The notes under the pieces are model-generated. The model was not told the DNA's origin, did not search any database, and saw only the letters and a list, made by a program, of their open reading frames with translations. The position numbers were made by a program, and so were the translations under genes. This document shows, in pieces, positions 3,903-59,352 of a stretch of 64,000 bases of DNA. Each line of letters opens with the position of its first letter. The first letter of the stretch is position 1. Source of the stretch: Hydrolagus colliei. Taxonomy: Eukaryota. The stretch covers positions 14,756,001 through 14,820,000 of the forward strand of contig CM068756.1 in the NCBI GenBank assembly GCA_035084275.1, given 5' to 3'.

Positions 3903-3957
3903 ATGTTGGAGAGTTATGTGTTTCAGTATGTATATCTGATTGGGATTATTTCCACAG
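3903..3957 (+). CDS. Gene A exon 1, leader MLESYVFQYVYLIGIIST-G
   Basis: ATG + 18 codons + phase-1 donor G|GTGCGT; same size in all paralogs. Confidence 0.8.
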
Positions 3958-4108
3958 GTGCGTGTTCATTCTATACCCCAATTTGCCGAAAATGGAAATA
4001 AATGACGTAATATAATATTATTTTTATTGATAGAATAAGTCTCTGTGCATTACTTTGTCTTTCACTGTAATTCTCTTTCTAATTAACGTTTGAATTTATT
4101 TCTGATAG

Positions 4109-4429
4109 TTGTTGATGGTACAATGATCAGAGTGACCCAAATCCCAGATCATATGGAGGCAATTAGAGGCACTAACGTTACCTTCCACTGCATGTTTCCT
4201 GACGCTCAATCCAACTCACGTGTAAAAGTTTACTGGTTGAAAGAGGGAGAGAATAGCTACCTGCATACAAGGGAGGATAAAAGACAACTGTTTGAGTTTG
4301 AAAGTGAACAAAAAAGCTTCTTTAAACTCCAAAATGTGAATCTCCAGGACTCTGGTGTGTATCATTGTGTTCTCGTGCTTCAGGGGAAAATAGCGGCCAG
4401 TGGACCTGGATCACGCCTGGATGTATGGG
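4109..4429 (+). CDS. Gene A exon 2, Ig V-set domain with J-like end (GPGSRLDV)
   Basis: AG acceptor; C-x14-W; DSGVYHC; phase-1 donor GTAGGT; 321 nt. Confidence 0.92.
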
Positions 4430-5794
4430 GTAGGTATGGTTTCAGTGAAGAACGGCAATATTCCAAATTAGATTTTGAGCCAAAAACTCTGACCATGTGT
4501 GAAGGACATTTTCATTATTTTTAGAATATGAAACAGGTGTTTCAAAATGTTATCCTTTAAAATGAATCTTCCTGGGGCCAGATGGGGTCTGCTTGGAGAT
4601 GACTCCCGAATTATTCACTTGACAATAGAATGTCTGAATCATATCAACCCTCTGCAATGGCCTCAGTCATTGGTCCAGCTCTTAACCCAGGCAGGGCTGC
4701 TGTATTCTGGGGCATGACTTTTGCCAGCCTAGTTCATCAGTTGGACTAAGAGAGACAGGCTTGTCATTCTGGGCAGGCTGATAACATTGAACCTGTTAAC
4801 ATTAACTCTGCAGGTAATATAGCCCTCATGGATACGGTTACGTCACATAGATCATGCACTCATATGCAACAGTGAATCTTAATTTTTAATTTTATTATTC
4901 TTATCATATTCTTACATGTTTGGAAAGCATGTGCTAAAGTGTTAGCTGGGAATGTTGTTCAGCGCTACATTACCAGCAGTGTCTTTATTCGGATAAGATC
5001 GCCATTTGATATCAACAGTAAAAAGATGATACCTTTTGAAAAGAGTGCCTCCCGGTGTGCCAATGAACATATCCACAATTTTATCTCCAGACAGAATTTT
5101 CTCCAGATAAAATTGTACATACAAAAAAGCTTTGTGATGTGATTTGAGGGATTTCAACTTACTGAGAATCTATATCAAATGCAAGGATATTTAAAACATA
5201 ATTTTGTAAAGATTTGGACTATTTAAAACTCCAAGTTTTCATTAAATATGATTTAAATCATCAACTAAATAGATTTAGTTAAATATAATGTCAGTAATTA
5301 ATTATTTCTTCATTTCACTGAGAATGAATACAATATCAGCATTGGCTACATTGCTGTTGTGATTGTCTGTGTGGCTCAAACATTATTTTCTTCTCCGGAA
5401 TTTCAATCTATAACTATAAAACAGTTTTTCTTATTACCCCAGTACCAGGCATGGATAAATGAAACGAACAAATTTGTTTGAATGGGGATATATATCAGAA
5501 TTGTGAAAAATAATATTTTATTATGCGGAGATTGAGACATTCAATGTGATAACTTTACATTCTATATTTATTCATTTTTGAGTGGAACTTTAGTGATAGA
5601 GTATCGTTCCCGAGACAAATTTTATAGTTGTTATTGATGGCGAACAAATCAAAATCAGAACTAAAGATTTACAAAGCAAATCAATCATACTCAAGATTCT
5701 GTATTGAAACAAATGGTATACAAATCATAATACAGTTTAATCTCCACCAACTGATGAAACTTTTTGTAATTCTGCTGCACCATTTGTTCTACAG

Positions 5795-6106
5795 TTCCTC
5801 CAACTCCACTGAAGATTTTCTCAAAAATTCCTAAAATAGGTTTGCAAGACACTCTGACTCTTGTGTGTGAAACCACTGCATTTTATCCAGAGAATCTTAA
5901 CCTCACTTGGTATAAAAATGGCACCAAAATTCCATCTGGAATGAATATCTCTAAACAGCGGAATGCAGAGGGATTGTATGAAGTTTCAAGCTTTGTGGAA
6001 GCGAACAAGCCTGTCCAAAGTGGGGTTGTTTATACCTGTCAGGTTTCTCACATCAGCCTTCAGATTCCAGAAATTGCCAACTACACAGTTGAGTTCTCCA
6101 ACACAG
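5795..6106 (+). CDS. Gene A exon 3, Ig C1-set domain
   Basis: LVCETTAFYPENLNLTWYKNG...GLYEVSS...YTCQVSH; AG/GT sites, phase 1. Confidence 0.92.
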
Positions 6107-6479
6107 GTAGGATGCCAGTAATCTTACTGTCATAATAAAATTTAAAATCTGTATTTTTTTCAAAAGAATATTTCCTACTATTAATTACAGCAAATTAGGT
6201 AAAATCCACTTATTCTTTACATGCAATCATATATATATATATATATCTGCATGATTTTCTTTCAAATGCTCTATGCAATATATCCTGTGAAGCATTGTAA
6301 GACTTGCTCTCTGTGTGAAAGGCATGGTATTCAAGAATTATTTACCGTTATGTAGTGCATCATTAACAATAAATTACATTTGTACAGTCTTTCACAATCA
6401 TTGGCATATTCTGTTTACAACACTAAATGGAATGAACTAATACTGTTTTACCTTTTTCTTTGTATTATTATTGGAATAG

Positions 6480-6584
6480 GAAATAATATTGAAGTCTATC
6501 AAATACTAATATCTGGATGTGCAGGAGTGACATTTCTCGTACTTTTAATCATTGTAATGTCATGGCGATTAACAAAAAGGAAAG
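6480..6584 (+). CDS. Gene A exon 4, uncharged TM (ILISGCAGVTFLVLLIIVMSW-RLTKRK)
   Basis: Hydrophobic run followed by basic stop-transfer residues; AG/GTAAGA, phase 1. Confidence 0.85.
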
Positions 6585-7448: not shown

Positions 7449-7492
7449 GCTCGCACAGAAAGCTGAATGGGTGTGATGTTTGTGGAAAGCAG
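7449..7492 (+). CDS. Gene A exon 5, 44-nt cytoplasmic exon (GSHRKLNGCDVCGKQ)
   Basis: Same length, phase and similar sequence as the 44-nt exons of D and E. Confidence 0.8.
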
Positions 7493-8225: not shown

Positions 8226-8312
8226 AAAATCCATGAAGAGACGTATGAGACAGTGGAATATGTCCCATCTGATTTGAAAAGACATCCAGGGAAAGTGGCA
8301 GTAGGTGCCAAG
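8226..8312 (+). CDS. Gene A cytoplasmic cassette exon 'a' (KIHEETYETVEYVPSDLKRHPGKVAVGAK), ITIM degenerate
   Basis: Homologous to ETVAYATLDLK of gene D; phase-0 donor AAG|GTACAT at the homologous position; read-through stop at 8333. Confidence 0.55.
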
Positions 8313-8800: not shown

Positions 8801-8980
8801 ACCAAACAAGTGACAGACGGTAACATGCTGACGTATGCAAGTTTGGACTTGTCTGGCTCCAAAACAAAGGGAAAGAGAAATCCTGAATGCAGTGATAGTA
8901 AAACAGAATATGCCCAGATACACGTGAGAAAGCATAGAGTCGCAGAACCAACCAACTACAAGGAACCAACAGTAGCATAA
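8801..8980 (+). CDS. Gene A terminal exon 'b' with ITIM LTYASL and ITSM TEYAQI
   Basis: CACAG acceptor; TKQVTDGNMLTYASLDLSGSK...KTEYAQIHVRK...stop; homologous to 59146-59352. Confidence 0.85.
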   Translation, partial: TKQVTDGNMLTYASLDLSGSKTKGKRNPECSDSKTEYAQIHVRKHRVAEPTNYKEPTVA

Positions 8981-10655: not shown

Positions 10656-11247
10656 TCTATTGATTGCTGAAAGAGTTTCTATGATTATACGGAAGTGTCT
10701 CTCCTCATAAATTAAATAAGAACATTGCAGGTCAACTTAATGAAGAAAATTAAGTTTTTGAATTGCCATAAACTCCTAAATATTTTATCATGATACATTT
10801 CTGTTTCTATAACCATGGTCATTACCACTGCAAATTATTTGTCACAAATTACATGTCACCCACCTTCCCCCAATAAAACATTAAACCATTCCAAAGAAAT
10901 AATTATTTCACTAAATACTACTTCAGCAACAAACCATTTCTCCAGTCTACTGAGGAGGAATATAAAGGAGTTTCTCAGCTGTATTGTGACACAGTTCAAA
11001 ATCTATTTTCTTGTCCTGAGTTTTCATCTCCAATTCCATTCCAACTATAAGACTATATAATCACAGAAATAATATGTAGCTAAACTTCCTATTGCTACCA
11101 TTTACATGTGCATAACAGATTTGAGTGGAACATTATGATTTACATGAATTGTGGGAGCTGAAAAGAAAAACAATTTGCACAGAAGTTATGTAATTCTGCT
11201 CAGTGATCAGTTCCACCAACTGTATTGGTGGAACTGTAATTCTACAG

Positions 11248-11290
11248 TTCCACCAATACAGTTGATGATTTTCCCTACACTTCCTAAATG
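11248..11290 (+). pseudogene. Truncated C1 exon stub (VPPIQLMIFPTLPK)
   Basis: TTCTACAG|TTCCACCAATACAGTTGATGATTTTC matches C1 exon start TTCTACAG|TTCCTCCAACTCCACTGAAGATTTTC; cut off by L2-derived sequence. Confidence 0.6.
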
Positions 11291-11299
11291 CGACCCATT

Positions 11300-12400
11300 T
11301 GCATCTCTGACTGTCCTGTGTTAAACACGAGCATATTACCCCAAGAATCTCAGTTTTTGAGACCGTGGAACATTCAATCCTCCTCCACTGCCTCTCCTCT
11401 CACCTCAACCTTCAAGGTTCGGTCCTTGACTCTTTCCGGTCTTATCACACACCATCTCCAATTTGTTTCCACTAACAGTTTCTCTTCCAGCTCCCAAACC
11501 AACACATGCTTGACCCTGGTCCTATCTTCTTCAACCTCTACATGATCCCCTTGGTGACACCATCCATCAGCAGACATGTACATGGATGACACCTAACTCT
11601 ATCCCTGCCTCCATCCTTAATTCCAGGAAAACTGGAGTCCTGACAGATTGGCTGTCAGACATCAAGTAATAGATGAGAGATAACTTTCTATAGTTGAATG
11701 TCAGAAAAATTTAGGCCCTCCTGATTGGCTCATGCCAGTGCCTCTGCACCTCAATTACTGGCAGCATCAACATCCATGGATGCACACTCCATCTCACCAA
11801 TCCAGTTAGAAACCTTAGGTGTCTTCTTTGACCCTGAAATGTTCTTTCTCCCCCATATCAGCTCTGTATTCCACCACCTCTGTCCTAGTCAGTCACTGCC
11901 TCACCCCTTAGGCCACAAAACTGTCACACATGCTTTTGTAACCTCAAAGCCTGACTACGGCATCTCCCTCCTTGCTGGCCTCCTCAATTCTTCCCTCCAC
12001 AAGCTACAGATCACCCTAAACCTCACACTTGCCCAGCTCCACTGGCTCCCCACCCCTCAAAGGATAGAATTCAAAATTCTCTTCCTCATCTACCAGGCTC
12101 TCCATTCACATGACCACCCTTACCACTCTAACCAGATGATCCCTTATCAACCTGCCTGCTCTGTCCATTCGATAGGCCCCTAACTGCTGCATATCTCCTG
12201 TCTGACCAGCCCTATGATTGGTGGCTGGGCTTTTAGCCTCTCTGACTCTACCCTTTGGAACTCCATGCCATAATACCTTCACCTTACTCCCTCCCTTGCC
12301 TCATTCATGGCTAGAATCAATGGCTACTCTTCAATCATATCTGCAGCTGCCCTCCTACATATTTAATTCTGTTGTTCAACTGCTGGGACGTTGCGTTTAT
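11300..12400 (+). mobile_element. Old L2 LINE fragment
   Basis: Decayed RT (MYMDD for YADD), [27 protein letters not shown]. Confidence 0.8.
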
Positions 12401-12489
12401 CCAGGCCTTGATGTCCATCAAAAAAGCTGACGAGATATAATAATAACTTTTACGTGGACAAAAGCTGTTGCAAATCCCATTGAACACTC

Positions 12490-12612: not shown

Positions 12613-12673
12613 ATGAGAATGTTGGCGAGTTATGTGTTTCAGTGTGTATATCTGATCGGGATTACATCCACGG
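12613..12673 (+). CDS. Gene B exon 1, leader (MR)MLASYVFQCVYLIGITST-G
   Basis: In-frame ATGs at 12613 and 12619; donor G|GTGCGT. Confidence 0.8.
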
Positions 12674-12778: not shown

Positions 12779-13099
12779 TTGTTGACGGTACAATGACCAG
12801 AGTGACCCAACTCCCCGACCATGTGGAGGCAATTAGAGGCACTAACGTTACCTTTCAGTGCATGTTTCCTGACACTCAATCCAACCTGCGTACAAAAATG
12901 TATTGGTGGAAGCAGGAAGACAATGGATACCTGCATACGAAGCCGGATAAAAGAAAACTGTTTGGGTTTGACAGCAAACAAAGCAGCTTCTTTAAGCTCC
13001 TAAATGTGAGTCACCAGGACTCTGGTGTGTATCAGTGTGCCCTCATGATTGAGGGAAAATTAGTGGCCAGTGGACCTGGATCACATCTGGTTGTATGCG
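12779..13099 (+). CDS. Gene B exon 2, Ig V-set domain with J-like end (GPGSHLVV)
   Basis: C, W and DSGVYQC motifs; 321 nt; AG/GT, phase 1. Confidence 0.92.
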
Positions 13100-14704: not shown

Positions 14705-15016
14705 TTTCTCCAACTCCACTGAAGATTTTATCCCAAATTCCTAAAATAGGTTTGCAAGACACTCTGACTCTTGTGTGTGAAACCACTGCATATTATCCAG
14801 AGAATCTTAACCTCACTTGGTATAAAAATGGCACTAAAATTACATCTGGATTAAATATCTCTAAACAGCAGAATGCAGAGGGATTGTATGAAGCTTCAAG
14901 CTTTGTGGAAGCGAACAAGCCTGTCCAAAGTGGGGTTGTTTATACCTGTCAGGTTTCTCACATCAGCCTTCAGATTCCAGAAATTGCCAACTACACAGTT
15001 CAGTTCTCCGACCCAG
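14705..15016 (+). CDS. Gene B exon 3, Ig C1-set domain
   Basis: LVCETTAYYPENLNLTWYKNG...YTCQVSH; 312 nt as in gene A; donor GTAAGA. Confidence 0.92.
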
Positions 15017-23616: not shown

Positions 23617-23671
23617 ATGTTGGTGAGGTTTGAGCTTCAGCAAGTGTATCTGATAGGAATGATTTTTGCAG
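23617..23671 (+). CDS. Orphan or alternative leader exon MLVRFELQQVYLIGMIFA-G
   Basis: ATG + 18 codons + G|GTGTGT; family-like promoter motif GGAAATTGAACGTCAC about 70 nt upstream; no V exon of its own. Confidence 0.65.
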
Positions 23672-23804
23672 GTGTGTGTTTGTAGTATATTTCAATTTTC
23701 TGAAAAAGAACATAGAGGAAGCAGTTCTATGTACTTCAGCAATTTACATAAAGTTAACCAATCCAGTTATCCATTTACATAGAATTGTTTGCGTCAGGCA
23801 ATCA

Positions 23805-24180
23805 GAACATAAGAACATAAGAACCAGGAGCAGGAGTAGGCCATTCGGCCCCTCGAGCCTGCCCCTCCATTTGATAAGATCAGGGCTGATCTTCTGACCT
23901 AACTCTAATTACCTGCCTTATCCTCATATTCCCTAACCTCTCTATATTTTAAAAATCTATCAGTCTCAGCCTTGAAAATGTGTTCAAGGACTGAGTATCT
24001 ACAGCCTTCTGGGGTAGTGAATTCCATAAATTCACTACCCTTTGAGTGAAGAAATGATTCCTCAACTCTGTTCTAAAAGGCTGACCCTTAATTTTAAGAT
24101 TATGACCCCTGGTTATAGATTCTCCTACCAGGGGAAACAGTCCCTCACTGTCTACTTTATCTAGCCCTTTAAGAATTTTA
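23805..24180 (-). mobile_element. CR1-clade LINE 3' fragment
   Basis: KGLDKVDSEGLFPLVGESITRGHNLKI...FFTQRVVNLWNSLP; (TTATGTTC)n tail. Confidence 0.85.
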
Positions 24181-24659
24181 AATCTCAGATACACAAATTG
24201 CACCTTTCACTGTATCTTGGCCTTCGTTGAACCTAACTCATATATGAAAGTACTAGTATGTCCAAAACTGGCAATAATAATAATAGTAATCCGGAGGGAG
24301 GTCGAAAAACAAGGGCATACAAAAGGAAACAATTTTGGGTTTGGAAGTAAAAATAAAGGTTTCTTTCAGCTTTTTAATGTCAGCCTATGACTGGATTTAT
24401 CAGGAGAAAATAGCAAGTTAGTGAACCTCAATCACATCTATATATGTATAGACAGAAACCTTCCTGCATGGCTCCTGTCAGCAACTAAATACATCACAAT
24501 AACAAAATTCTATTTGTAGAGCACCTTTCGCTTTGTAGGACATCCCAAGATGCTGAACAGTCAGGGATCAGGTGGGGTGGGGTGGGTGGTGGGTTGGGGT
24601 GGGGTGGGGATGCAGGGTTTGGATGAGGGAGGTCAGAGAGATGACAGAAAATTAAACAT

Positions 24660-26209: not shown

Positions 26210-26530
26210 TAGCTGATGGTGCTTTTATCAAAGTGACCCAGTACCCCGAACACCAGGCTGTAAGCAGAGGTGCTGATGTCAAGTTCTACTGTGCCTTCCC
26301 TCTCCCTGATCACAACTCGTATGTTAGAGTCCACTGGTGGAAGCAAGGCGAGCGTCAATACATACACACGAGACCCAATAACAGGATAAATATTGGTTTT
26401 GACAGTAAATCATGTGGCCTATTGCAACTCCATCATGCCACTGTCCAGGACTCCAGAGTCTATCACTGTACAGTAGTTATTCGGGGGGAAATGGCAAGAA
26501 ATGGAACTGGATCACAGTTAACTGTATACG
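26210..26530 (+). CDS. Gene C exon 2, Ig V-set domain (GTGSQLTV end; DSRVYHC)
   Basis: 321 nt; C, W, C conserved; AG/GTAAGT. Confidence 0.92.
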
Positions 26531-26911
26531 GTAAGTAAGAATACAAGTTGCTTAAAGTGGAAAAATCTCAAAACGTTTCCGTGCATTTATAACGATTTCT
26601 AGTGAATACGTTACAGATACAAACACAGTAGTCATGTGCACAGAACCCATGTAAATGAATAAATATATATTTTGGAGACCGGTTGGACACCCCCGTTCTT
26701 ACCAATAATTTACCGCTACATTTACTTTATTTGTGTCTACTGAAAAGACATACACATTTCCAGTTAACATTTCATCCTAAAACAGCACCTTCAATAATAT
26801 AGTCAAAAATATAAAATAGAAATAAGACACAATTATGGTACATCAAAAACTGAGTAAAGTTTAATCCAGCAACTGAATCCATGTAACTAGACTCTGTTAT
26901 TTCTTCTACAG

Positions 26912-27229
26912 TTCCTCCAGATCCACTGAAGATAGAGCACACAGCTCCTCAAAAAAATACAGCTACATCGCTGACCCTTGTGTGCAAAACAGCTGCATTT
27001 TATCCGGAGAATCTGACCCTCACTTGGCATAAAAATGGGACTGAAATTCCAACTGGGATAATTACCACTAAACAACAGAATACAGATGGACTTTATGAAG
27101 TTTCCAGCTCTTTGGAGGAGATTCAGCCTGTCGTGAGTGGGCTTGTTTATACCTGTCGGGTTTCCCATCTTAATAACCAGACGGCAGAAATTGCCTATAC
27201 TGTTCCTCCTCGAGATACACAAAGAGAAG
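26912..27229 (+). CDS. Gene C exon 3, Ig C1-set domain
   Basis: LVCKTAAFYPENLTLTWHKNG...YTCRVSH; predicted GC donor AG|GCAAGT. Confidence 0.88.
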
Positions 27230-28219
27230 GCAAGTGGATTTGTGCTAACTATTTTTACTGGAATGTTTGCTTCTTTTATTCTGCATTTTAAAATATAGCC
27301 ATACAATTTACATCACATAAATTACCTGTAATAACAATTAATAATCCTAGATTTGATATAAGACTTTCACGTTCGGAAGACATCTCAACAAGCTTCACAG
27401 GTTACACTGAATTGTATGGCAACGTGACAACTAATTTCCACACAGCAATGTTCCATAAATAGCCATGAAGTGAATGACCGAGATAATTTGGGGGATTATT
27501 AACCAGAGCAGCTTCTCTTTTCGAACCATGCCATGGAAAGTCAATTAGTTAACAATTTTACAGAAATATAACATTATAGTAATCGGCACCATAATTGATA
27601 GGCATGATTTACACTCCCCTTAATAATAAATAATACTCTTTATATTTCATTTAAGAGGCGTTCAATACGGGAGAATGCCTCATAGCGCTTCGCATGACAT
27701 AATGTAAAGTGTATTGATTGCATTTTGTGAGAAAACACAACGGACAACAGTATCCCCAAAACAATAATAAATAAATGATAAATTGTATGTGGATGATTCT
27801 TGGCCAGGGGACAGAAGAACCCTCTTCACTTTTAAAATAGTGCAGTACCTATTGTCCAATTGAAAAATATGAGCTTTCATATATTGAAATATATGAGCCT
27901 AAGGATGGTACCTATAGATATAAATTAGTCAAGTTTTATTGGAGAATATATTAACTGCAGGCAATGTAAATCAATATACTGCACTGTAATTTGCCTGTAA
28001 AAATGCTAAAATCTCAGCTTTAAAATAGTTTACTTCTAATGAATGTGAGCAGGAACTGTTGCCAACTTGCACACAGCAACGTTCCATAAATGGCCATATG
28101 AAGTGCACAATCAATTTCATTTAGGACCAGAGCCAAGAGCAGTTTCTCTTTTCCAATAGTGCCATGGTTTCATTAACACCCACTTCAACAGGCAGAGATA
28201 ATCTGGGTTCATAATTGCA

Positions 28220-34257: not shown

Positions 34258-37200
34258 ATAACCTTAATACAGTAATACTGATCATCATAGAATCTTACAG
34301 CACAAAAGGCCCAACGTGTCAGTGCTGGCTCTTTGAAAAGAGCAATCCAAAGTCAATCCCACTCCCCGGCTCTCTCCCCATAACCCTGTGCTCCCCAAAT
34401 AACCATTCACGTCTCTTTTAAATGTTGTTATCGAATCGGCCTTCACCACCTTTCAGGCACTAAAATAACAATCCTAACAAACAAACAGAAATACAAGCCA
34501 ATGTTATTTGAGAGTGATTGGTCAGGATACCACAGAAACTCAGGAACTTGGAACTCATCGTCTCTGCTAATCATCTGACTCCATATTGCCAAGTGAGCCA
34601 AGCTGACACCCAAGGCCAGATTATGGGGCAGAGGGGGGAAGTTAGATCACATTCAGGAGCCCTTTGAACTATGCATGCAAAATATGTAACAATATCTAAT
34701 TTAGATACTTTCTTGCATGACTTCATAGTTGCAAACATGTCAACTGCAAGATCAACGATATTGTGGGCACAATAGACACGATTGCTTGTCCATTCACTCT
34801 ATCTGGGATCACTGGTTAATTGAGCGATTTTTGGATGAGACTTATCTTTGCGAACAAGTGTTCACCTTCACAGAGCCGGTACTGGTAATATTTAGAATAT
34901 ATGAAATGTAATTGCTATTTGGGAAATATTGATTCCACCAAGTAATTGTATTTAATATACCTCAGCATTTCTCGCTGAATTTTGTCACTTGGATTATGTG
35001 AAATCCAGAACGAGCGCAAATTGATCGACACTGTCTTTATTAAAATATATTTATAGCGTTTCTAAGATAAACTCTATCGCTGCAGAATATGACATCTATT
35101 CTCTACTGTTATGTTGATGGACCTTCTGGAGATATGACTATATGACTAAATGTCTCTAGCTCTGCCTCATTGGGTGTCACTCACGGTTAGCCTCTCACCA
35201 GGTTGTATGAGGCACAAGGCAGCTGGGGCCACTCTCATACTCGGGACGCCCCTTATACCCCAAGGCCCCCCCCCACAGACGGTGCTCCCCTCCCGTCCTC
35301 AGACCCAGGGGCTCCTCTCAGACGCAGACTCCCTTCAGAACCTGGGACCCAGCCACCCCCCCATCAGACCTCGAGTATATAAACCATGGTTTACCTGTTG
35401 ATTGGTTAATCCAGTCTTTTTGATACATTTAATCTTTTGTTTCTTTCAATATTCTATCCTACTTTCATACCTGAACTGAAACAAAGTAGAACTGACCTCT
35501 CCACCGGGTGTCAGACTTCATGGCTTCATCAAGTTTGACTTGTGAGCCTTGATTACCACAAAGTATATAACTCTAAGCATACATATTCACACAACTGCTG
35601 GGCAGTCATCCTGCCACAAACCAGCTATCAGACCTAGAACTGCATTATAGACTGAGCAGGCCTTTGATAATGTAAGTGGAGTGTGAGATTCCAATGGGTA
35701 TTTTATGATGAAGTGTGAACTAACTAGTTTTCCGATCTTTGGTGTTACAGACAAACGTAGGAATCCTGTAACTCGGCAGATACACTGTCCTGGACTTCTC
35801 AGACTCCAATAAAACTACAAGGGGCTCAAAATCTGAATATACTGAGATACAGTTGAGGGAGTATAAGAGAGGGATATCTACAATGAAGCAAGAATAAGAA
35901 ATGCCCAATAAATGACTCAGAGCTATTTGTATATTATTTGTAATACTGGTCAGACTCTGGGTATATATCAAGGATTATTATTATTAAACAGTAAAACCTT
36001 AATAATCCAGCACGGTTGGGGCACTCAATGCCCAGATTTCGGAGATTGCCTATATTTAGAACCTACCCTAGAAATGGCTGGGGAAGCCCCATGGGTGCTG
36101 TAAACAAAGCACTGACATGGAAAAAATGCACGAGTGGCAATCACAGCACCAGATAACAGAGTGACGAAAGCGTGAACTGCAAGCAGCTGTTCTGAATTTG
36201 AGGGTATTTGCTGACTTCGGAAGAAGATGAATGCTGTATGTATTTTCAAATCTTACGGATTTAGCAAGTTGCCGGCTTTTGGAATGTTGGATTATCGAGG
36301 TTTTACTGTATTGTTACTCATGCAACTGTAGTTTATTGAATCATAAAATATCACAACACAAAACAGACATGTTGGTGAATTATATCTGCAATAGTGCTTT
36401 ACCCTGCATGAACCAACAATCTCATAATCTGTTCACTCCCCTGAACATTCCTCCTTTTCAAGAGAATTCCACATTCCCGTCGACTGCGTAAATGTTCTAA
36501 ACGCTGCTTTGCCTTTTATCTTAAATTGGTGTCCTATCGCCACTGACAGGTCAACAAGTGCAATGCGTATTAATGTTTACTCCTATTTTAGTTTTCATTC
36601 AATAAAATAAAACTTATAATATGAAGCACTATTCCAAGTGGAACCCATGTCACAAGATTGATGCTCTCTTCCTTGTCTCTGGTCAGCTCATTCTCACTTT
36701 AGCAATGATGGCATCAACCGTGCAGAAAAACAACAACTTGCATTTATGTAATGGTCCCTGTGTGGGATACTATCCAAGATTGCTTGACATTGGCAGAGCA
36801 CAACACAGAGCTACCAATAGGGAATAGAGGGCATGAGGACATGCAGAAGGCCAGAACCACTCAAGTGGAGACAGTGGGTTGTAGTTCGGGGGGTAAGCAG
36901 GTCGGTGATGTAGGAAGGTGCCATGGCATGAAGGGATTTGAAAATGAGTATGACGATCTTGAAGTCGATCTGTTCAGCAACAAGGAACCATTGAAGCTTG
37001 GCTAGGACTAATGTGAGACATGCCTTTTGTAGAGCAGGTCCAGAACCTTGTTATCTTGTTTGATGCTCGACTCTCATTCAAACCTCACATAGGTGTTCTC
37101 ATTCTCTCAGCTTTCCCTTACCTCTGCAATAATGTATGCCTCTCAACTCCATTAGCATTCTTGCCCTCCCCTGGATGCTTATCTATGAGTTTCAATAAAC

Positions 37201-42611: not shown

Positions 42612-42929
42612 TTCCTCCAGATCCACTGAAGATAGAGCACACAGCTCCTCAAAAAAATACAGCTACATCGCTGACCCTTGTGTGCAAAACAGCTGCATTT
42701 TATCCGGAGAATCTGACCCTCACTTGGCATAAAAATGGGACTGAAATTCCAACCGGGATAATTACCACTAAACAACAGAATACAGATGGACTTTATGAAG
42801 TTTCCAGCTCTTTGGAGGAGATACAGCCTGTCGTGAGTGGGCTTGTTTATACCTGTCGGGTTTCCCATCTTAATAACCAGACAGCAGAAATTGCCTATAC
42901 TGTTCCTCCTCGAGATACACAAAGTGAAG
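42612..42929 (+). CDS. Gene D exon 3, Ig C1-set domain
   Basis: 318 nt; predicted GC donor AG|GCAAGT. Confidence 0.88.
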
Positions 42930-44021: not shown

Positions 44022-44111
44022 GGAGCGCATTGACAACTTCACAGATTGCTGGTTTTGTTGTAGGTGGACTTGCACTTTTGGTGTTTATTATAATCATTGG
44101 GCAAATGAAAG
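44022..44111 (+). CDS. Gene D exon 4, uncharged TM (QIAGFVVGGLALLVFIIIIG-QMK)
   Basis: AG/GTAAGA, phase 1; paralog at 56622-56711. Confidence 0.85.
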
Positions 44112-44858: not shown

Positions 44859-44902
44859 GGTTACACAGGAAGCATAATTTATCGGACCATCGTGGCAAGC
44901 AG
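44859..44902 (+). CDS. Gene D exon 5, 44-nt cytoplasmic exon (GLHRKHNLSDHRGKQ)
   Basis: AG/GTAATT; paralogs in A and E. Confidence 0.82.
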
Positions 44903-45560: not shown

Positions 45561-45737
45561 GGGGTGCAGGTATCAGAGGCTGAGACGGTGGCTTATGCCA
45601 CATTGGATTTGAAAATTTTTAAGAAACGTTCAAGACCCAAGCATCAAGAGGAGAGAACAGTGTATGCACAGGTAGAGCTGAAAATCACAAACTCCAGTTA
45701 TAAATCAGTTATCCAATGTCAATTATTACCAAAGTAA
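45561..45737 (+). CDS. Gene D cassette exon 'a' with ITIM VAYATL and ITSM TVYAQV (read-through stop)
   Basis: TTACAG acceptor, phase 0; internal donor CAG|GTAGAG at 45671/45672; stop TAA 45735-45737. Confidence 0.85.
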   Translation, partial: GVQVSEAETVAYATLDLKIFKKRSRPKHQEERTVYAQVELKITNSSYKSVIQCQLLPK

Positions 45738-46907: not shown

Positions 46908-47124
46908 ACCAAGCAAGGTCTGTAAAGTCAATTGTACCCCAAACAAGCTGACGTACGCTACTCTGGAGTTTTCGGGATCCAAGAAAACAGGAAAATGTAA
47001 ACGTATTGAGAAGGATACCCAGTATGCTGAAATACAGTTGAGAAACTACAGAGAGGTAGGGGCGATATCACCAGACACATACAGTCACAATAATCAAAGT
47101 CACTTGTTAGTGTGGCCTTCATGG
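46908..47124 (+). pseudogene. Gene D cassette exon 'b' (LTYATL / TQYAEI), disrupted at its 5' end
   Basis: Near-identical to 59146-59352 but reads TKQGL* from the acceptor because 7 nt are replaced by 17 nt. Confidence 0.75.
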
Positions 47125-49720: not shown

Positions 49721-51443
49721 ATATAACTGCGTTTTTAAACATGTAAAATAAATACCAGTTGTTTTGCTGATTACAGTGCAATCTCCTGACTTATTAACTG
49801 TTGAAATACTAATAGTTATAGTTTCCAATGCGTCAATAAAGCATGGAAGTGTGCGTCTCAGAAAATGAGAACATAAGAATATAAAACAGAAAATAAATAA
49901 GCTCTGCCCTCTGGTGTGGGAAGCCAAAACGACTAATCGGATATTCAGTTATTAGAGACCTTTTTTCTCTGCAATTAACGTTATCCCAGCGCCTTGGGAT
50001 GTGCTCTCGACATGAAAGGCACTCTATCAATGCAATTTTGTTGTTGTTGTTATCAATCTAATACTTCACAGCTCAACAGTCTTCACAGACAGAGTTCTGT
50101 AAGATTATTGGAGATATTGAGCCACTTGTATGACAACAACAATAACAAAATAAAATTTGTATAGCATGCGAGGATGTTGCAAGCCATAACACCTTGTATA
50201 AAAAGATCCTGCTGATATAGAACAGTTGAAAATATGCTGACATGCTCATTTCTAGGAAGGATGGTTATAAGACAGTTGCAATGGCTGAAGTGGAGAGTAG
50301 AGTTAATAAAAGAGTGAACGGCGATTGTTTACAAAGAAGACAGAATAGAATAAACAATCATCATTTAGATTATTGAAATCCACTGTTGAAATATGTTGTA
50401 TAATGATCATATTGGTTGATACAGTGCCAAACACAAAAACAGTTCAAATGCAATTACTGTCAACTACATTGCGCAGTTGTAGCAAAAATCCCAAGTCATA
50501 TTTTGCACAGTAGGATATCACAAGCATTCAATAAGTTAAGAAGATCAACATATTGGGAAAAAATCTTGTTTTAAACGTAGTCATAGGTGCACCAGAACAG
50601 ATGTTGGTTTACTGTTTCAGCTGCAAAATATGAACTGAAGTCCAAACATTGCATTTGAACAATGCTTCAAACTATAAAACTAAAAAATACAGCAAGCGGA
50701 TTCTTGCCCTGCCATATAGAATATGAATTTGGTAAGCCCTTAATGTTTGATGTTTAATCGAGTTAGATTTCTTGTTGTCTACCATTGAATTGACACTTTT
50801 AATATTGAATTGAAAAAAAAACACTTAAGATTAAAAGAACTGTTGACATTGTTAAAATGATTGACACACTGTCATGGTTTGCAGCGCCAACCTGTGGTAT
50901 TTTGAGGAAAACGAAGCGTTTGTGGTAAAGGTGGGTTCAAACTCCACATTATTTCCTTCAACCGTCAGCTGGTCAATAGCATTAAATATAATCCTCTTGT
51001 CCGTCATTACATCATAAACTGTCAACCACATGTCAGGCTTCACAGCTTCATCAAGGCTTCACGTGTGAGCCTTGAGTGCTGCAAATTATGTAATTCTAGC
51101 AACGTAAATTCACACAACACCTGGGCAGCGTCCCTGCCATAAACCAGCTATCAGGCCTAGAACTCCATTTTGTACTGTGGAGGCCTTTTTTGCAATGGAA
51201 AAAGAGTTTGAAATTCCAATGGGTGTTTCACTATATTTTTCAGAATTTTTTTATAAGGAGTGAAAAATTCATTTTCCAATCCTTGTTATACAGATAAACA
51301 TGGGAAGCCTCTAACTCTGTAGTTACACAGTGTTGCAGAGAAATTAATTTGATATCTATTAGAATTATATTATGTGAAATATACAAACTATGTTAATGCC
51401 CTGAACTGAGTGATTTGATTCTGGTCCATTATCCATCGTACAG

Positions 51444-51747
51444 CCATCTCCACTCAACATTTTCTCTAGGGTTCCTGCAAGATTCTCATCTGTCCTTTTG
51501 GCTCTTGTCAGTGAAACTAACATGTTTTACCCAGAGAATTTCAATCTCTCAGGGTGTAAAAACAACATTGAGATATAATCTGGAACAAATATCACTAAGC
51601 AGCAGAATGCAGAGGGACTGTATGAAGCCTTCACCTCTGTAACAGAGAAACAGACTGTCCAGACCGAGACTGTCAAGTACCGGTATCTCACCCCAGCCTC
51701 CAGACCCCAGAAATGACCAACTATAGGGTTAACTTGTTTGATCATGG
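51444..51747 (+). pseudogene. Pseudogene F, C1 exon (frameshift, stop, first Cys and Trp lost)
   Basis: LVSETNMFYPENFNLSG...EI*SGTNITKQQNAEGLYEA, clearly homologous to the A/B C1 exon. Confidence 0.85.
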
Positions 51748-53024
51748 TAGGAAACTAACAATCTCACTCATGGCTACATTTTCATAGGAATATTTCCATA
51801 TACTCATCAAATTAGTTGCATTGTTTGTTTTTATGTAAAATCTGGAAAATAATCAGGAAAATAATTAAGTTTTAAAGACTTGTCTACAAGACTTCCTTTC
51901 CTGAAGCAGGACGTTTGTCAATCATTCAGTCTTATTTGAGACAGTTAGTCTCAAATAATTTGAATTAGACATAATTAAATAATTGGCTATTTTAATCAAC
52001 ATCGCAAATGATTCATACAGGTAATGTCCAGTCAATCTATTTGATAATATACTGTGTGAAGCGCTTTGAGACGTGCCTACAAATGACAAGCACTGTATCA
52101 AATGCAAGTTTTCTTTTAATATAATGTCAATTTTCTATGGAAAATATTTGATACACTGATCTTGTGAAAACAATGTTTCTTTTTAAATTCGAGCAACAAC
52201 TTTCTATTATTTGCTACTATTTTTTCAGGAAAACAAACAAAGAATGTATAATACAGAACAATTGCACTTAATTAATTTTAATTATTTAATCTCCACTTGC
52301 AGTTATATAATAATAATAATCCTTGCATTTGTTATAGCGCTTTCCACATCTTATCAACGTCCCATAGTGCTTCACAGAATATACTGTAAAGTGAATTGAC
52401 TGTATATATATTTGTGGGCGATAGTGGGAGCTGCCGAAAAGTGTTGTAAACTACAGAACAACAAATATCCACAAAATAACTTGTAAACTGTTTTCAGTCT
52501 GCAGTAAAATTATTGTTTTGTTGGATAACGGATGGGTAAATCTTGACGTTAGTTCATATAAAATTGATGCCATTGGAGTTCTTGTCTTTCAAATATTTTA
52601 TCTTTAACTGTCATATTTAGTCGAAATCCAAACTGGTGCATGCCTTAATGCTTTTTTGGGTGGACACACCATAAATTATTCCAACTCTCATTCTAGGCAT
52701 GAAGCTATATTGCAGTTGAATGCCATCACGGTAAGCACAAATTGCATAAGAACATAAGAAATGTTAAATGAAAATAAACAAGGTCCCTTTAGTTCACCTT
52801 ACACCTTCCTGGCGGTCACATGCATAGATATCCCAAACTATACTACTATATCCCATTATGTTATTTCCCAAACAAATCTATGTTTGAAACTACTCTTCTG
52901 AAATCGTCTGTGGAACTACCCTTTGTATTAAATCCTATGGAGCACTGTGAGATATTCTCCCAATGTGAAAGGCGTTGTGAGGATTATAAGAACATAAGTC
53001 TCACTGTTCTATTTTCCTTTGTAG

Positions 53025-53137
53025 GTTATGATGATAAATCATATGCAATTGCAATTTCCCAATTTCCATCAAGCATGTTGCTAATGCTGCTCATGATTAT
53101 CATCATTGTGGACAATTTCAGAAGTAATCCTCTTTAA
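53025..53137 (+). pseudogene. Pseudogene F, TM exon of gene-B type (Arg replaced by Gln)
   Basis: GYDDKSYAIAISQFPSSMLLMLLMIIIIVDNFRSNPL* aligns with the gene B TM exon. Confidence 0.75.
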
Positions 53138-53750: not shown

Positions 53751-53805
53751 ATGTTGGCGCTTCTTGTGTTTCACCGACTATCTTTAATTGGAATCATTTC
53801 TAAAG
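53751..53805 (+). CDS. Gene E exon 1, leader MLALLVFHRLSLIGIISK-G
   Basis: ATG + 18 codons + G|GTTTGT. Confidence 0.8.
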
Positions 53806-54361: not shown

Positions 54362-54676
54362 TAGCTGATGGAGCTTTGATCAAACAGTACCCCAAACACC
54401 AGGCTGTAATCAGAAGTACAGATGTCAAGTTGTACTGTGCCTTCCCTCTCCCTGATCCCAACTCGTATGTTAAAGTGCACTGGTGGAAGCAAGGCGAGAG
54501 TCGATATCTGCAACGTATGCCTGATAAGAGGAAAACATTCCGTTTTGACAGTAAATCATGCGGCCTATTTCAGCTCAATGATACCACACTTCAGGACTCT
54601 GGAGTCTATTACTGCACGCTGATTATTGATCAGAAAATGGTAGGAAATGGAACTGGATCACAGTTAACTGTATATG
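54362..54676 (+). CDS. Gene E exon 2, Ig V-set domain (DSGVYYC, GTGSQLTV)
   Basis: 315 nt; lacks the two codons VT of KVTQYP. Confidence 0.9.
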
Positions 54677-55039: not shown

Positions 55040-55357
55040 TTCCTCCAGATCCGCTGAAGATAGAGCACACAACTCCTCAAAAAGATTCACCCACATCTCT
55101 GTCCCTTGTGTGCAAAACAGCTGCATTTTACCCAGAGAATCTGACCCTCACTTGGCATAAAAATGGGACTGAAATTCCAACCGGGATAATTACCACTAAA
55201 CAACAGAATACAGATGGACTTTATGAAGTTTCCAGCTCTTTGGAGGAGATACAGCCTGTCGTGATTGGGCTTGTTTATACCTGTCGGGTTTCCCATCTTA
55301 ATAACCAGACAGCAGAAATTACCTACACTGTTCCTCCTCGAGATACACAAAGAGAAG
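55040..55357 (+). CDS. Gene E exon 3, Ig C1-set domain
   Basis: 318 nt; predicted GC donor AG|GCAAGT. Confidence 0.88.
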
Positions 55358-56621
55358 GCAAGTGGATTTGTGTTAACTATTCTTTTAAAATGTTTCCTTC
55401 TTTTATTCTGCGTCTTAAAATCTAACCATTCAATTTACTTCACATAAAATGCATGTTATAACAAGTAGCAATCCTATATTTGATATAAAGAATTCAGGTC
55501 TGGAAGTTGTGTAAACACTCTTCACAGGTGACACTGTATTTGTAGGCCAATGTGGCAACCAATTTGCACACAGCAATATTCCATAAATATCTATCAAGTG
55601 AACGACTGAGATAATTTGGGGGATTATTAACCAGAGCACCATAGCAGCTTCTCTTTTCAAATCCTGCCATAGCAAGTGAATTAGTTAACTGTCTGATAAG
55701 AACATAACCTTCTATTAATCTGCACCATGGTGTATAGGTAGTGTTTGCTTCTTTTAAACTCCCTGTAATAATAAATAATAACCCTTATATTTTGTATAAG
55801 AGGCTTCCAGGTCAGGAGGATATCTCATAGCACTTCACACGATATACTATAAAGTGTAATGATTGTATTGTGTAAGTAAATACAGCAAACAACAAAATGC
55901 TACAAACAACAATAAATAAATTATAAATTGTAAATGGGGGATTCTTGGTCAGATGACAGAAACTCTTTTAAAATAGTATGATAATATCTGTCGTCCATTT
56001 GGGAACTATGAGCTTGAATAAACATCCATCGGTACCTGTCAATATGAAATATTGAAGTTTTAATGGAGAATTCATTATCTGCAAAGAACATGAAACAATA
56101 TAATTTGCCTCTGAAAATGTTAAAATCTCAGCTTTCAATATTTAATTGATAATGAATGTGAGGAGGAATTTATTCCATCCTATGCTATTTTATGGATTAA
56201 TATTATGTATTCTGTATACTTTCTCTCGTGCAATGTATACAGTTATTGCTACAGAAATATCTGCTGCATGGCTTATTACAATTCTGCTTGGTTTGGAACT
56301 GAACTCAGTGTTTCTCCTGAAACCAGAGCTGAGTTTGGGAGCTGAGCCTGTGGGCTACACACACAGGTTTCACGTTACCATAGCACAGTTTAGAATACAA
56401 ACAATACAATTAACTACGTATCTGCCCATCCCCGTCCCTCAGTAACAATAAATTAATAATTTATTTTAAAAAGGTAAACCTGAATTCGCAATCGAGGCAG
56501 GAGACAAATCATTGAAATGTCCCACAAACATGATCATGATTTCTCCTGAAATTATTAATTTCAGGTGGTTTGTATAATTATCAAAATTATGAATAATTCT
56601 CAAGTTTCTTTTTTTATGTAG

Positions 56622-56711
56622 GGAGTCGCTTTCAAAAAATACAGATTGCTGGTTTTGTTGTAGGTGGACTAGCCTTCTTGGTACTTTTGGTAATCATTGG
56701 GAAAAAGAAAG
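56622..56711 (+). CDS. Gene E exon 4, uncharged TM (QIAGFVVGGLAFLVLLVIIG-KKK)
   Basis: AG/GTAAGA, phase 1. Confidence 0.85.
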
Positions 56712-57501
56712 GTAAGAGTTCGGATTTTTTTCTGGTTAGTTGTAAATGCTTAATTCTAATATAACATTTGAATGTGTAATTGAAACATTGACACAGAATG
56801 AAAAAATGGAGAAGTAATATTTTCCCTGGCTAGGCGATAAGCTCTTCTCCAACACCGTCATGTATGGCATTACAAAATACAAGTTGTTTGTTGTTATACA
56901 AAACTGTGTTAAACTTTAGAGAGTACTGACAAGCGTTCAGAAATTTTTTTAAAAACTCACATTTCAGTAAATCAAATTGGTTGCACTTTTACCATTAGCA
57001 AATCATAGATTACAACAGCTGCGTGGAATCTGTGGGAAATGCTCTCAGAATGGATGTCAAACAGGTCTGCCCACAGAAGCATGTTTTTCACAAGTGTAGG
57101 CGTGATATTTTAAAACCATTCTTGCAAAACATAAATTCAAATATCAGGCTTTTTTACATTGAGAATGTGAGGTGAAGCACCAATAATTGTACATGATTGT
57201 TGATGGGGTAACAGAAAGAGAGCTAGATAGACAAAACACAGATTCCCAGCTACAGATGCTGGGAATCTGAAACAAAAACAAAAATTGCTGGGGAAACTCA
57301 GCAGGTCAAACAGCATCCATGGAGAAAGGAAAAAGAGTCAATGTTTCGGGTCTACAAGCCTTCGTCAGGACTGATAGATTGGGTTGGGTTTTAAAAGCTT
57401 GTATGTTTAATTATGAAAGGTGTTGCATCACTTCTACCAAAATATATTTAGAAATAGGAGAAGAGTAAATATTTTCGTGAATAAGTTTCATTTCTTTTTA
57501 G

Positions 57502-57545
57502 GATTATGCAGGAAACATAATTTATCGGACCATCATGGCAAGCAG
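57502..57545 (+). CDS. Gene E exon 5, 44-nt cytoplasmic exon (GLCRKHNLSDHHGKQ)
   Basis: AG/GTAATT. Confidence 0.82.
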
Positions 57546-58517
57546 GTAATTAAAATAATTATCCAATTTTAATTTTCATATCCGAAGTGCGATTAGTAAA
57601 ATGGAACTTTTCTTATGATTGAGAATATTGAGAATATTGAGAATGTTTTGAATGTTTCATAGCAAAACGCTTGTAGTATCCACCTTTCAAGCAAGAGAGC
57701 ACTGCTTTAATTTCTGTGCTGGGATAAACCTTAGGAGTCCTGTTGCTCAGTGGTGAGAGTAATCGTCTTACAAGCAAGCGGGATCGATTCCAGGCATGGC
57801 AAAACCTTGCACAAGTCTCTTTACTCCACATGCCTCATAATAATCCCTCAAGAAAGAAACGATAATAAATTGGTCACTTCAATCCACGACAGTTTGTGGG
57901 ACACTCTGAAGCACTCTGAGACGCTGTCCAGCGTGGAGGGTGCTATCTAAATCGAAGTTATTGTTGTTGTTGTTGATGACACTGCTGTGCGCAATTGGCT
58001 GCCGTGTTTTACGCACAAATATACAGTCAATTAGTTTTACTGGATATTCTGTGAAGTGCTTTTAGACTAAAAACATGAAATGTCAAATGCAAGGATTATT
58101 ATTAGCCACGTTTCCTAACTCCAGTCTTCTGTTTATCTAACACTAAGTAGGAACCCAGTTGTTATTTGACTGGATCACATTCAATAAATGATCCAAAATG
58201 TTTTTAAAAATTGGTCACTCAATTCCCACACATTGATGAGGCGAGTGTTTGTGATGTGTGCATTTAACTGCTGCGTTTAGCCGACAAAATGCATAACCAA
58301 TCCACTTTACAATATCTCTTGTGAAAGGCTTTGGGACATCCAAACCATATGACAGGGTGATATCTCAAATGTGGGAATTGTCATTATATTATAATGTACT
58401 GTATTTCATACAAGTCATTACTATTTCACTGTGCAATTCAGTGTGACTGGAAGCTTTTTTGAAAAAGATTCCCAAATATCTGCATAACAATTTAATGTTG
58501 CAAATTGCAATTCACAG

Positions 58518-58694
58518 GGGGTACAGGGATCAGATGTTGAGAAAGTGGCTTATGCCACACTAGAGTTGAAACGTTCCAAGAAACATTCAAGACCTAAACA
58601 TCAAGAGGAGAGGACAGTGTATGCACAGGTAGGACTGAGAAACACAAACTCCGGACATAAATCATTTATCCAAAGTCAATTATTTCTAGGGTAA
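58518..58694 (+). CDS. Gene E cassette exon 'a' with ITIM VAYATL and ITSM TVYAQV
   Basis: Phase-0 acceptor; internal donor CAG|GTAGGA at 58628/58629; read-through stop at 58694. Confidence 0.85.
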   Translation, partial: GVQGSDVEKVAYATLELKRSKKHSRPKHQEERTVYAQVGLRNTNSGHKSFIQSQLFLG

Positions 58695-59145
58695 ATAGTT
58701 CAAATTGCTTTAGTTGATATGTTTAATATTTTATACATTGCTGCATGAAATAGCTTCCCTCCTCCGATCATCGAGCATTTTATCAGATGCTGATCAGACT
58801 TCGGTTACACAGATCTTCCATTACTTAGCCATACCCATTACATGATTCTGGAGCTCAGACAGACTATAAAACCAAATAGATTGGAAAAGCCAGTATCATC
58901 TAAAAATCTATATATATTACTCCTTCAGTTTGGGCCATCACCTTCGCCAGCATTGTCAAGCGTTTCAAGTCAATCTCTTGACGTGATTGCTGCTATGTCA
59001 AAGAGAATTGTACTGTTTTTGTGGCAGAAGGATGCTGAGTTCAACAGGAGTTCTCTCCGCATGAATCGAAGATGGAGATTATAGCAAGTATTGTGTAGGT
59101 TGTTCTTAATCTTCCCATCAAGAGTGAACAAAATTGACTTTACAG

Positions 59146-59352
59146 ACCAAGCAAGGGGTTATTACCCCAAACAAGCTGACGTACGCTACTCTGGAGTTTT
59201 CGGGATCCAAGAAAACAGGAAAATGTAAACGTATTGAGAAGGATACCCAGTATGCTGAAATACAGGTGAGAAACATCAGAGAGGCAGGGGCAATATCACC
59301 GGACACATACAGTCACAATAATCAAAGTCACTTGTTAGTGTGGCCTTCATAG
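59146..59352 (+). CDS. Gene E cassette exon 'b' with ITIM LTYATL and ITSM TQYAEI
   Basis: TTTACAG acceptor, phase 0, open to stop; homologous to gene A terminal exon. Confidence 0.8.
   Translation, partial: TKQGVITPNKLTYATLEFSGSKKTGKCKRIEKDTQYAEIQVRNIREAGAISPDTYSHNNQSHLLVWPS

Follow-up and report, generated by a model that had tools for sequence, protein, structure and literature searches.

A putative family of non-rearranging V(J)-C1 paired receptors of SIRP-like build in a tandem gene cluster of Hydrolagus colliei

C1-set domains are rare outside the immunoglobulins (Ig), the T-cell receptors (TCR), the MHC and a few relatives. Among the systems closest to the one described here, the SIRPs (SIRP-alpha, also known as PTPNS1, SIRP-beta and SIRP-gamma) combine a germline V domain that contains a J-like strand with two C1-set domains, and comprise inhibitory and activating members with near-identical ectodomains. 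The V domain of NKp30 (NCR3) and shark NCR3 is of the non-rearranging VJ type, with a GxGT motif, and the activating form has an arginine in the outer leaflet of the transmembrane segment, but NKp30 is linked to the MHC and lacks a C1 domain; B7H6 (NCR3LG1) has a V-C1 ectodomain, but is a ligand and not a paired signalling receptor. KIR, LILR and the teleost NITRs share tandem clusters, birth and death with pseudogenes, the origin of activating genes from inhibitory ones and ectodomain exchange, and their ectodomains are C2/I-set or V-only (in NITRs, V or V plus an I-type domain); we know of no C1-set domain in any of the three. Current models of antigen-receptor origin, which build on UrIg, UrIg2, NKp30 and SIRP, take germline VJ-C1 genes as their raw material. 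In UrIg and UrIg2 of cartilaginous fish, VJ is followed by 3–11 C domains, and the UrIg2 gene has a split leader, as in antigen-receptor V genes (PMC12227049). Here we describe five genes, A–E, in a window of 64,000 nucleotides (nt) of Hydrolagus colliei DNA, whose numbering is used for all coordinates. We consider it likely that they are a tandem cluster of Chondrichthyes-restricted, non-rearranging V(J)-C1 type I receptors that form inhibitory and activating pairs, are SIRP-like in build and work by the mechanism proposed below. This is not a new principle.

Exon sets were located by a tblastn search of the window with the exons of gene A, and gene models were assembled from reading frames and splice signals, all splicing being deduced from the sequence. 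The five genes are intact and lie on the + strand between position 3903 (the ATG of A) and position 59352 (the end of the stop codon of E), exactly the limits set in an initial annotation of this DNA (Table 1). In every gene, a split leader, one V exon with a J-like strand, a single C1-set exon and a single transmembrane segment are joined by consistent phases in an intact open reading frame (ORF) with AG/GT or AG/GC splice sites (AG/GT at all sites in gene A). The leader exon is 55 nt long and of phase 1, and the last four leader residues are encoded at the start of the V exon (315–321 nt), which ends with an in-frame J-like strand of the form GxGSxLxV: GPGSRLDV in A, GPGSHLVV in B and GTGSQLTV in C, D and E. 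The C1 exon (312–318 nt, exactly one per gene) encodes the motifs VPPTPLKI..., LTLVCET/KTA(A)FYPENL, LTWYKNG, GLYEVSS and VYTC(Q/R)VSH. Pfam was run on proteins A, B, C and E, the ectodomain of D being near-identical to that of C, and matched the C1-set (E = 1e-12 to 3e-16) and V-set (E = 1e-6 to 3e-9) models in all four, so these domain matches are not due to chance. The front end of leader, V with J-like strand and one true C1 domain had been recognised at the outset.

A scan of the window for recombination signal sequences (RSSs) found 0 RSS-like sites, compared to 0.2 expected in shuffles. Since each V exon runs straight into its J-like strand and no RSS was detected in the window, the genes are germline-joined and non-rearranging; the separate RSS-flanked V and J segments that characterise Ig light chain and TCR loci are not a feature of genes A–E.

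In C, D and E, a GC donor (AAG/GCAAGT) closes the C1 exon and is the sole phase-compatible donor at this site. With this donor unused, C and D read into '...EGKWIC(A/V)NYFYWNVCFFYSAF' and a stop codon. The model of a Callorhinchus orthologue, P0009, ends in '...SKGKWIRVNYSYWNVSFFYSAS' at the same stop position, with 15 of 20 residues equal to the C/D read-through, and the read-through tail of E has diverged from those of C and D. The read-through end '...GKWICANYFYWNVCFFYSAF' may represent a conserved isoform that lacks the transmembrane segment and is secreted or lipid-anchored.

Behind this common front end, the genes carry one of two opposite membrane and tail modules. In B and C, one last exon encodes a transmembrane segment whose outer third contains an Arg three to four residues deep (TIITRFTWSV... 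and ITIIRLTFGV...) and whose inner end has an Asp, and the stop codon follows 8–11 residues past the membrane, in agreement with the transmembrane Arg and short tails first reported for these two genes. The outer Arg and the inner-end Asp-His or Asp-Tyr (IIVDH/IIVDY) are kept in activating transmembrane segments from chimaeras to sharks. The transmembrane segments of A, D and E carry no charge. Their exon ends in phase 1 and the exons encoding the immunoreceptor tyrosine-based inhibitory motifs (ITIMs) begin in phase 0; because the two would otherwise be out of phase, an intervening exon is required. An enumeration of phase-changing mini-exons identified one of 44 nt in each of the three genes, encoding GSHRKLNGCDVCGKQ, GLHRKHNLSDHRGKQ and GLCRKHNLSDHHGKQ, respectively, and its product matches the 'GSHRNQNRLNHCEEQ' segment of Callorhinchus proteins. 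The initial annotation had missed this exon. For the next exon of gene A, a weak acceptor at 8239 was tried and dropped; once the 44-nt exon is included, the frame is kept from the strong acceptor at 8226.

The tails of A, D and E are built from one or two copies of a unit that consists of an ITIM (V/L-x-Y-A-T/S-L), a spacer and a second tyrosine motif (TVYAQT or T-x-Y-A-x-I), the paired tyrosines being about 23–25 residues apart. The tail of E has two ITIMs, VAYATL and LTYATL, a canonical immunoreceptor tyrosine-based switch motif (ITSM), TQYAEI, and TVYAQT; that of A has one ITIM (LTYASL), one ITSM (TEYAQI) and a degenerate copy of the first unit (VEYVPS). In D, only VAYATL and TVYAQT remain, because a 10-nt indel relative to E shifts the last exon, which stops after TKQGL; the LTYATL/TQYAEI coding sequence persists out of frame downstream (Table 1). 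The uncharged transmembrane segments initially described for A, D and E therefore hold for all three, and the ITIM plus ITSM tails for A and E but not for D, which is without the second unit. A motif first read as TVYAQV arises solely by read-through into the intron; spliced, it is TVYAQT, and the spliced form 'EERTVYAQTKQG' is seen in all homologous proteins. The sequence ETYETV in A was considered as an ITSM and rejected, its Thr being at position −1 rather than −2.

These modules are combined with ectodomains that are nearly the same. The activating gene C and the inhibitory gene D are 98.8% identical at the nucleotide level in their V exons and 98.7% in their C1 exons, and the inhibitory gene A and the activating gene B 83.8% and 95.5%, respectively. 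Similar ectodomains, either an ITIM tail or a charged transmembrane segment with a short tail, and a tandem arrangement are the general signature of paired receptors, and all are found here. With V and J in one exon, no RSS and opposite transmembrane and tail modules, the locus bears out the idea of a germline-joined fish V(J)-C1 family with activating and inhibitory members.

A tract of high identity between C and D (95–100% in most 100-nt windows) takes in the V and C1 exons, most of the intron that separates them and roughly 180 nt past the C1 exon, with a dip to 82% and 65% at 26527–26713, inside the intron. Outside this tract, the two genes are 61–87% identical (71% in the leader exons), and similarity collapses past about position 27500. 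Synonymous divergence (dS) between C and D is 0.015 in V and 0.040 in C1. The tract indicates that the ectodomains of this activating gene and its inhibitory partner were homogenised recently. In two other comparisons dS is much higher in V than in C1 (A/B, 0.26 versus 0.037; C/E, 0.34 versus 0.13); either homogenisation reached the C1 exons later than it did V, or the V exons have been held apart.

A search with gene A retrieved 38 homologues, all from Callorhinchus and sharks and, one short fragment excepted, 33–57% identical. Their architecture is leader-VJ-C1-transmembrane segment, followed by repeated ITIM units or by an R...IIVDH transmembrane segment. When an ectodomain profile was searched against 1.84 billion representative proteins (clustered at 50% identity), about 85 clusters matched V-C1 in a single stretch. 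Family members score 80–160 bits for V and for C1 alike, compared to at most 54 bits for the closest outsiders; the source was traced for 14 family clusters, all of them from Chondrichthyes (sharks, rays, chimaera). The top relatives are Callorhinchus proteins with 48–73% identity (73% in V for the C lineage), and the A/B and C/D/E lineages appear to be older than the split from the Callorhinchus lineage. The activating transmembrane motif R-x16-IIVDH/Y recurs in proteins of Callorhinchus, Heterodontus and Heptranchias and in further members (the carriers are P0004, P0023, P0031, P0079, P0083, P0098, P0100 and P0149); its conservation from chimaeras to sharks argues for a conserved partner. 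Most remaining members have ITIM tails. The initial annotation would have given way to orthologues with extra C1 exons, but one C1 is common to nearly all Callorhinchus, shark and ray homologues, the exceptions being a few models with a duplicated C1.

These genes are already present in the public annotation of several genomes as automatic predictions under inconsistent names: SIRP-alpha-like, SIRP-beta-1-like, tapasin-related-like, Ig lambda-like, CD276, NCR3LG1-like and MHC class II beta-like. A full-text search for shark SIRP-like genes, whose coverage did not extend to the papers on shark NCR3, B7H6 and UrIg (2023), found no dedicated paper, and the family, which is large, is apparently unstudied. 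Outside Chondrichthyes, the first V-C1 match is a lungfish 'SIRP gamma-like' protein, and the nearest outsiders further include frog proteins with a V and many C1 domains and turtle multi-VJ receptors with an ITIM tail. The frog proteins (P0064, P0090, P0121 and P0145; 1221–2158 amino acids) begin with a V domain and continue with many C1-type domains, a layout similar to that of UrIg/UrIg2. The turtle proteins (P0142, P0108 and P0060, from Malaclemys, Chrysemys, Trachemys and Chelonia) have four to six tandem VJ domains, which are the closest non-chondrichthyan match to the family V, and the ITIM tail (VTYVDL) in at least one; they are automatically named FCRL5, pIgR-like, titin-like and NCAM2.

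By sequence and model comparison, the nearest known relatives of the family are the SIRPs. The reference V and C domains and tails used in profile scoring, trees and tail alignment were in part entered by hand; the SIRP-alpha segments among them agree with the PDB alignment obtained here. The best PDB matches of the ectodomain were SIRP-alpha (2wng, E = 8.8e-19), SIRP-gamma (1.3e-18), UrIg2 (9dmx) and B7H6. As PDB searches with the separate V and C1 profiles were swamped by multi-domain antibodies and titin, whose scores sum over domains, they were replaced by a per-domain hmmsearch against a small reference set. In this set, the C1 profile scored B7H6 C at 52 bits, Ig lambda C at 51, HLA-DR beta2 and SIRP-alpha D3 at 49 each and a lungfish SIRP-like C1 at 48, near-equal values that mark a true C1-set domain roughly equidistant from the classical ones. 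Of the two phylogenies proposed at the outset as a check, that of C1 domains places the family, which is monophyletic (100/99), as sister to SIRP C1 with weak support (82/64), the B7 C domains coming next; that of V domains again shows a monophyletic family (94/96), in an unresolved group with NKp30, the turtle V and B7/frog V.

The AlphaFold2 model of the ectodomain (predicted local distance difference test score 88.8, predicted template-modelling score 0.80) has a V + C1 fold as in light chains and in SIRP-alpha D1-D2, which agrees with the TCR/light-chain-like ectodomain proposed initially. Foldseek put Fab light chains first by E-value, with a poor global fit (template-modelling (TM) score 0.40–0.45, root-mean-square deviation about 10 Å); the best global superposition was that of SIRP-alpha (TMq 0.68, 4.2 Å). 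Furthermore, among six ITIM tails entered by hand as references, the tail of E aligned best to that of SIRP-alpha, with all four tyrosine motifs collinear (score 65, z = 7.7), compared to z = 4.6 for CD33 and 3.4 for PECAM1. The likeness that the initial annotation had seen to the tail logic of SIRP and PD-1 thus extends, for SIRP-alpha, to the order of the individual motifs, in E as a two-unit tail; A and D have two such motifs each.

Several observations weigh against this picture. In the C1 tree, human SIRP D3 sits elsewhere, on a long branch. The V tree places SIRP D1 with Ig V, apart from the family, and the family V profile scores SIRP-alpha D1 at 16.5 bits, below the turtle multi-VJ V (52), PD-L1 V (34), NKp30 (28) and lungfish SIRP V (26). 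A cassette of ITIM, spacer and ITSM occurs in many unrelated inhibitory receptors, so the likeness of the tails may reflect a shared cassette and not orthology. Each gene has one C1 compared to the two of SIRPs, and SIRP-beta uses a central Lys with DAP12, not an outer Arg. To these must be added that the GC donors and the 44-nt exon are deduced from phase and conservation alone, and that the recruitment of SHP phosphatases, adaptor pairing and ligand binding are predictions.

Considering (i) the C1 domain and the tail on the one hand and (ii) the single C1 and the family's own type of V on the other, we conclude that the family probably shares ancestry with SIRPs yet forms a separate lineage. 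It lacks the second C1 and has its own V type, and is therefore set apart from SIRP proper as a SIRP-like variant, one that is moreover restricted to Chondrichthyes and greatly expanded. It is possible, if doubtful, that the genes are true SIRPs instead, co-orthologues of SIRP-alpha and SIRP-beta with one C1 fewer, in which case the system would date to the jawed-vertebrate ancestor and might have a CD47-like ligand. The PDB matches, the global structural fit, the C1 tree and the collinear tail of E all point to SIRP, as do the NCBI names of many homologues, and one ray model, P0046, is V-C1-C1. The two C1 copies of P0046 are near-identical, however, and may stem from a recent duplication of the exon or from an error in assembly; the sister relation of the C1 domains is weak, SIRP D1 and the family V do not cluster, and the activating forms have the outer Arg and inner Asp in place of the central Lys of SIRP-beta.

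The VJ-C1 organisation also raises the question of kinship with antigen receptors. We judge it unlikely that the family is the surviving signalling form of an ancestral non-rearranging VJ-C1 receptor that was the ancestor of SIRPs and close kin to the precursor of rearranging receptors; if it were, cartilaginous fish would preserve the look and signalling of the pre-RAG antigen receptor as a large working family. Distinctly unlikely is the related view that these genes are relics of a UrIg-type antigen-receptor precursor, whose chains pair via V and C1 and whose V lineage is near the one that RAG invaded. It would account for the VJ-C1 and canonical split leader, for UrIg2 among the best PDB matches (at per-domain scores of 21–23 bits), for the Fab light chains at the head of the Foldseek list and for a Cys at the V-C1 junction of several family members. 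The family lies apart from Ig V in the V tree, however, and the C1 tree groups it with SIRP and B7, not with Ig/TCR C domains; its tails are typical of innate paired receptors, and chain pairing finds no support in the analysis. UrIg and UrIg2, which share single-exon VJ, split leader and C1-type domains with the genes described here, differ from them in the larger number of C domains, in forming Fc-like dimers, in their single or low copy number and in having no ITIM/charged-transmembrane pairing (PMC12227049).

That the genes are shark NCR3 (NKp30) family members with an additional C1 domain is very unlikely. The J motif of the V domain (GxGT/S, compare GNGTRLVV of NKp30), the outer transmembrane Arg of the activating forms, a V profile score above that of SIRP D1 and a place in the same part of the V tree do draw a parallel to NKp30. 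The NKp30-type V suggested by the initial annotation is nevertheless weakly supported: the NKp30 score is far under the at least 80 bits within the family, and a phmmer search of the PDB with V only returned generic immunoglobulin superfamily members (pIgR, NCAM, Robo, PD-L1), with NKp30 not in the top 60. Unlike NKp30, all of genes A–E have a C1 exon, and the family includes ITIM forms. The genomic setting argues in the same direction. Ray NCR3-like genes (NCBI names) lie in the MHC class III region, adjoining ddah2, and no automatic name of the family type occurs in the MHC gene tables examined. A white shark family member is located at 104.5 Mb on the 193.5-Mb record CM029971.1; the white shark MHC is on chromosome 19 (NC_054485.1), with MHC paralogues on chromosomes 16, 30, 8, 27 and 40. 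CM029971.1 is too large to be chromosome 19, although it may still be chromosome 8 (MHC paralogue 9). The loci examined in Callorhinchus (MU249845.1, about 15.5 Mb), white shark and catshark (LR744038.1, about 91.7 Mb) show the family gene only, with no neighbours, and our window likewise has no flanking non-family genes.

Finally, B7H6-like ligands shown to other cells are a highly improbable identity for these proteins: B7H6 C is the top single reference C domain, B7H6 gives a 54.6-bit single-stretch PDB match and some homologues are named NCR3LG1-like or CD276, but the B7-type V of B7H6 has no Gly-x-Gly J bulge and scores 11.7 bits, and forms with a charged transmembrane segment and short tail beside forms with ITIM tails are a hallmark of signalling receptors, not of B7 ligands.

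For the SIRP-like paired receptors that we favour, we propose the following mechanism. The V domain would bind a ligand. In A, D and E, Src-family kinases would phosphorylate the paired tyrosines, and the phosphorylated tails would recruit the tandem SH2 domains of SHP-1/SHP-2, which the 23–25-residue spacing suits, and damp activation as SIRP-alpha does. In B and C, the transmembrane Arg would pair with a transmembrane Asp of an adaptor with immunoreceptor tyrosine-based activation motifs, which would signal via Syk/ZAP-70. An outer transmembrane Arg is used with FcR-gamma or CD3-zeta by NKp46, NKp30, Fc-alpha-RI, LILRA and GPVI, and since the Arg of B and C lies in the outer leaflet, an adaptor of the FcR-gamma/CD3-zeta type is more likely than DAP12. 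Given the near-identical ectodomains of C and D, one ligand would be read by opposite signals.

If such a paired VJ-C1 family exists across Chondrichthyes, it implies either a deep, pre-bony-fish history of SIRP-type receptors or a striking parallel to them. Sharks, rays and chimaeras, in which checkpoint receptors of natural killer (NK) or myeloid cells are almost unknown, would also gain candidates for that role.

Table 1 Features of the 64,000-nt window of Hydrolagus colliei (aa, amino acids; LINE, long interspersed nuclear element)
Feature	Position	Strand	Exons and content
Gene A, inhibitory, 367 aa	3903..8980	+	Intact ORF, Pfam V-set and C1-set; 3903-3957 leader; 4109-4429 V with J; 5795-6106 C1; 6480-6584 neutral transmembrane; 7449-7492 (44-nt); 8226-8312 degenerate ITIM (VEYVPS); 8801-8980 LTYASL and TEYAQI, stop
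Gene B, activating type, 267 aa	12619..17333	+	Paralogue of A; 12619-12673 leader; 12779-13099 V with J; 14705-15016 C1; 17218-17333 transmembrane 'YTIITRFTWSVLVILLLTIIVVDHFRIHPIQT', stop
Gene C, activating type, 265 aa	25233..29022	+	25233-25287 leader; 26210-26530 V with J; 26912-27229 C1 (GC donor); 28919-29022 transmembrane 'AITIIRLTFGVFIILLLAIIIVDYIRFFPL', stop
Gene D, inhibitory, 318 aa	41514..46925	+	41514-41568 leader; 41900-42220 V with J; 42612-42929 C1 (GC donor); 44022-44111 neutral transmembrane; 44859-44902 (44-nt); 45561-45671 (VAYATL ... TVYAQ); 46908-46925 (TKQGL, stop)
Gene E, inhibitory, 379 aa	53751..59352	+	53751-53805 leader; 54362-54676 V with J; 55040-55357 C1 (GC donor); 56622-56711 neutral transmembrane; 57502-57545 (44-nt); 58518-58628 (VAYATL ... 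TVYAQ); 59146-59352 (LTYATL ITIM, TQYAEI ITSM, stop)
C1 read-through, gene C	27230-27291	+
C1 read-through, gene D	42930-42991	+
C1 read-through, gene E	55358-55425	+
Out-of-frame LTYATL/TQYAEI sequence of D	46936-47121	+
C/D high-identity tract	26227..27412 of C, about 41915-43100 of D	+	95-100% in most 100-nt windows
C1 pseudo-exon fragment	11247..11357	+	In-frame stop
Pseudogene	23617..24387	+	23617-23679 leader-like exon; 24187-24387 decayed V exon
Relic of last cytoplasmic (ITIM/ITSM) exon	35757..35900	+	6.7 kb downstream of gene C; in-frame stop, then 'RYTVLDF...SEYTEIQL' ('RYTVLDFSDSNKTTRGSKSEYTEIQLREYK')
Activating-type pseudogene	51420..53137	+	51420-51748 C1 exon with stop and frame shift; 53024-53137 transmembrane exon 'AIAISQFPSSMLLMLLMIIIIVDNFRSNPL'
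LINE fragment	306-1190	-
LINE fragment	2779-3615	+
LINE fragment	18799-19767	-
LINE fragment	29722-30408	+
LINE fragment	38806-39258	-
60-nt poly-C tract	21309-21368
Tandem duplication	34036-34257		Perfect, two copies of a 111-nt unit

Between the intact genes, the window holds four decayed exon sets (Table 1). The relic of an ITIM/ITSM exon, located 3′ of the activating gene C, suggests that C descends from an inhibitory gene. The activating-type pseudogene upstream of E, whose transmembrane exon has a Gln where an Arg is expected, resembles an orthologue of Callorhinchus P0004 (64–70% amino acid identity). Together with the C1 pseudo-exon fragment and the pseudogene of leader-like and decayed V exons, these remnants fit birth-and-death evolution in which activating genes arise from inhibitory ones. 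The conversion tract between C and D, the ITIM relic behind C and the Gln-for-Arg pseudogene would make the locus a clean system for following the birth of activating receptors from inhibitory precursors.

The DNA of the window is AT-rich and contains fragments of LINE reverse transcriptases, three of which match the Pfam reverse transcriptase model. They occupy the stretches that separate the receptor genes and lie at either end of the window, and several copies resemble one another in their C-terminal ORFs ('LHWLPI..RIEFKIL.L..KAL.GLAP.YL'). A poly-C tract and a perfect tandem duplication complete the features listed in Table 1.

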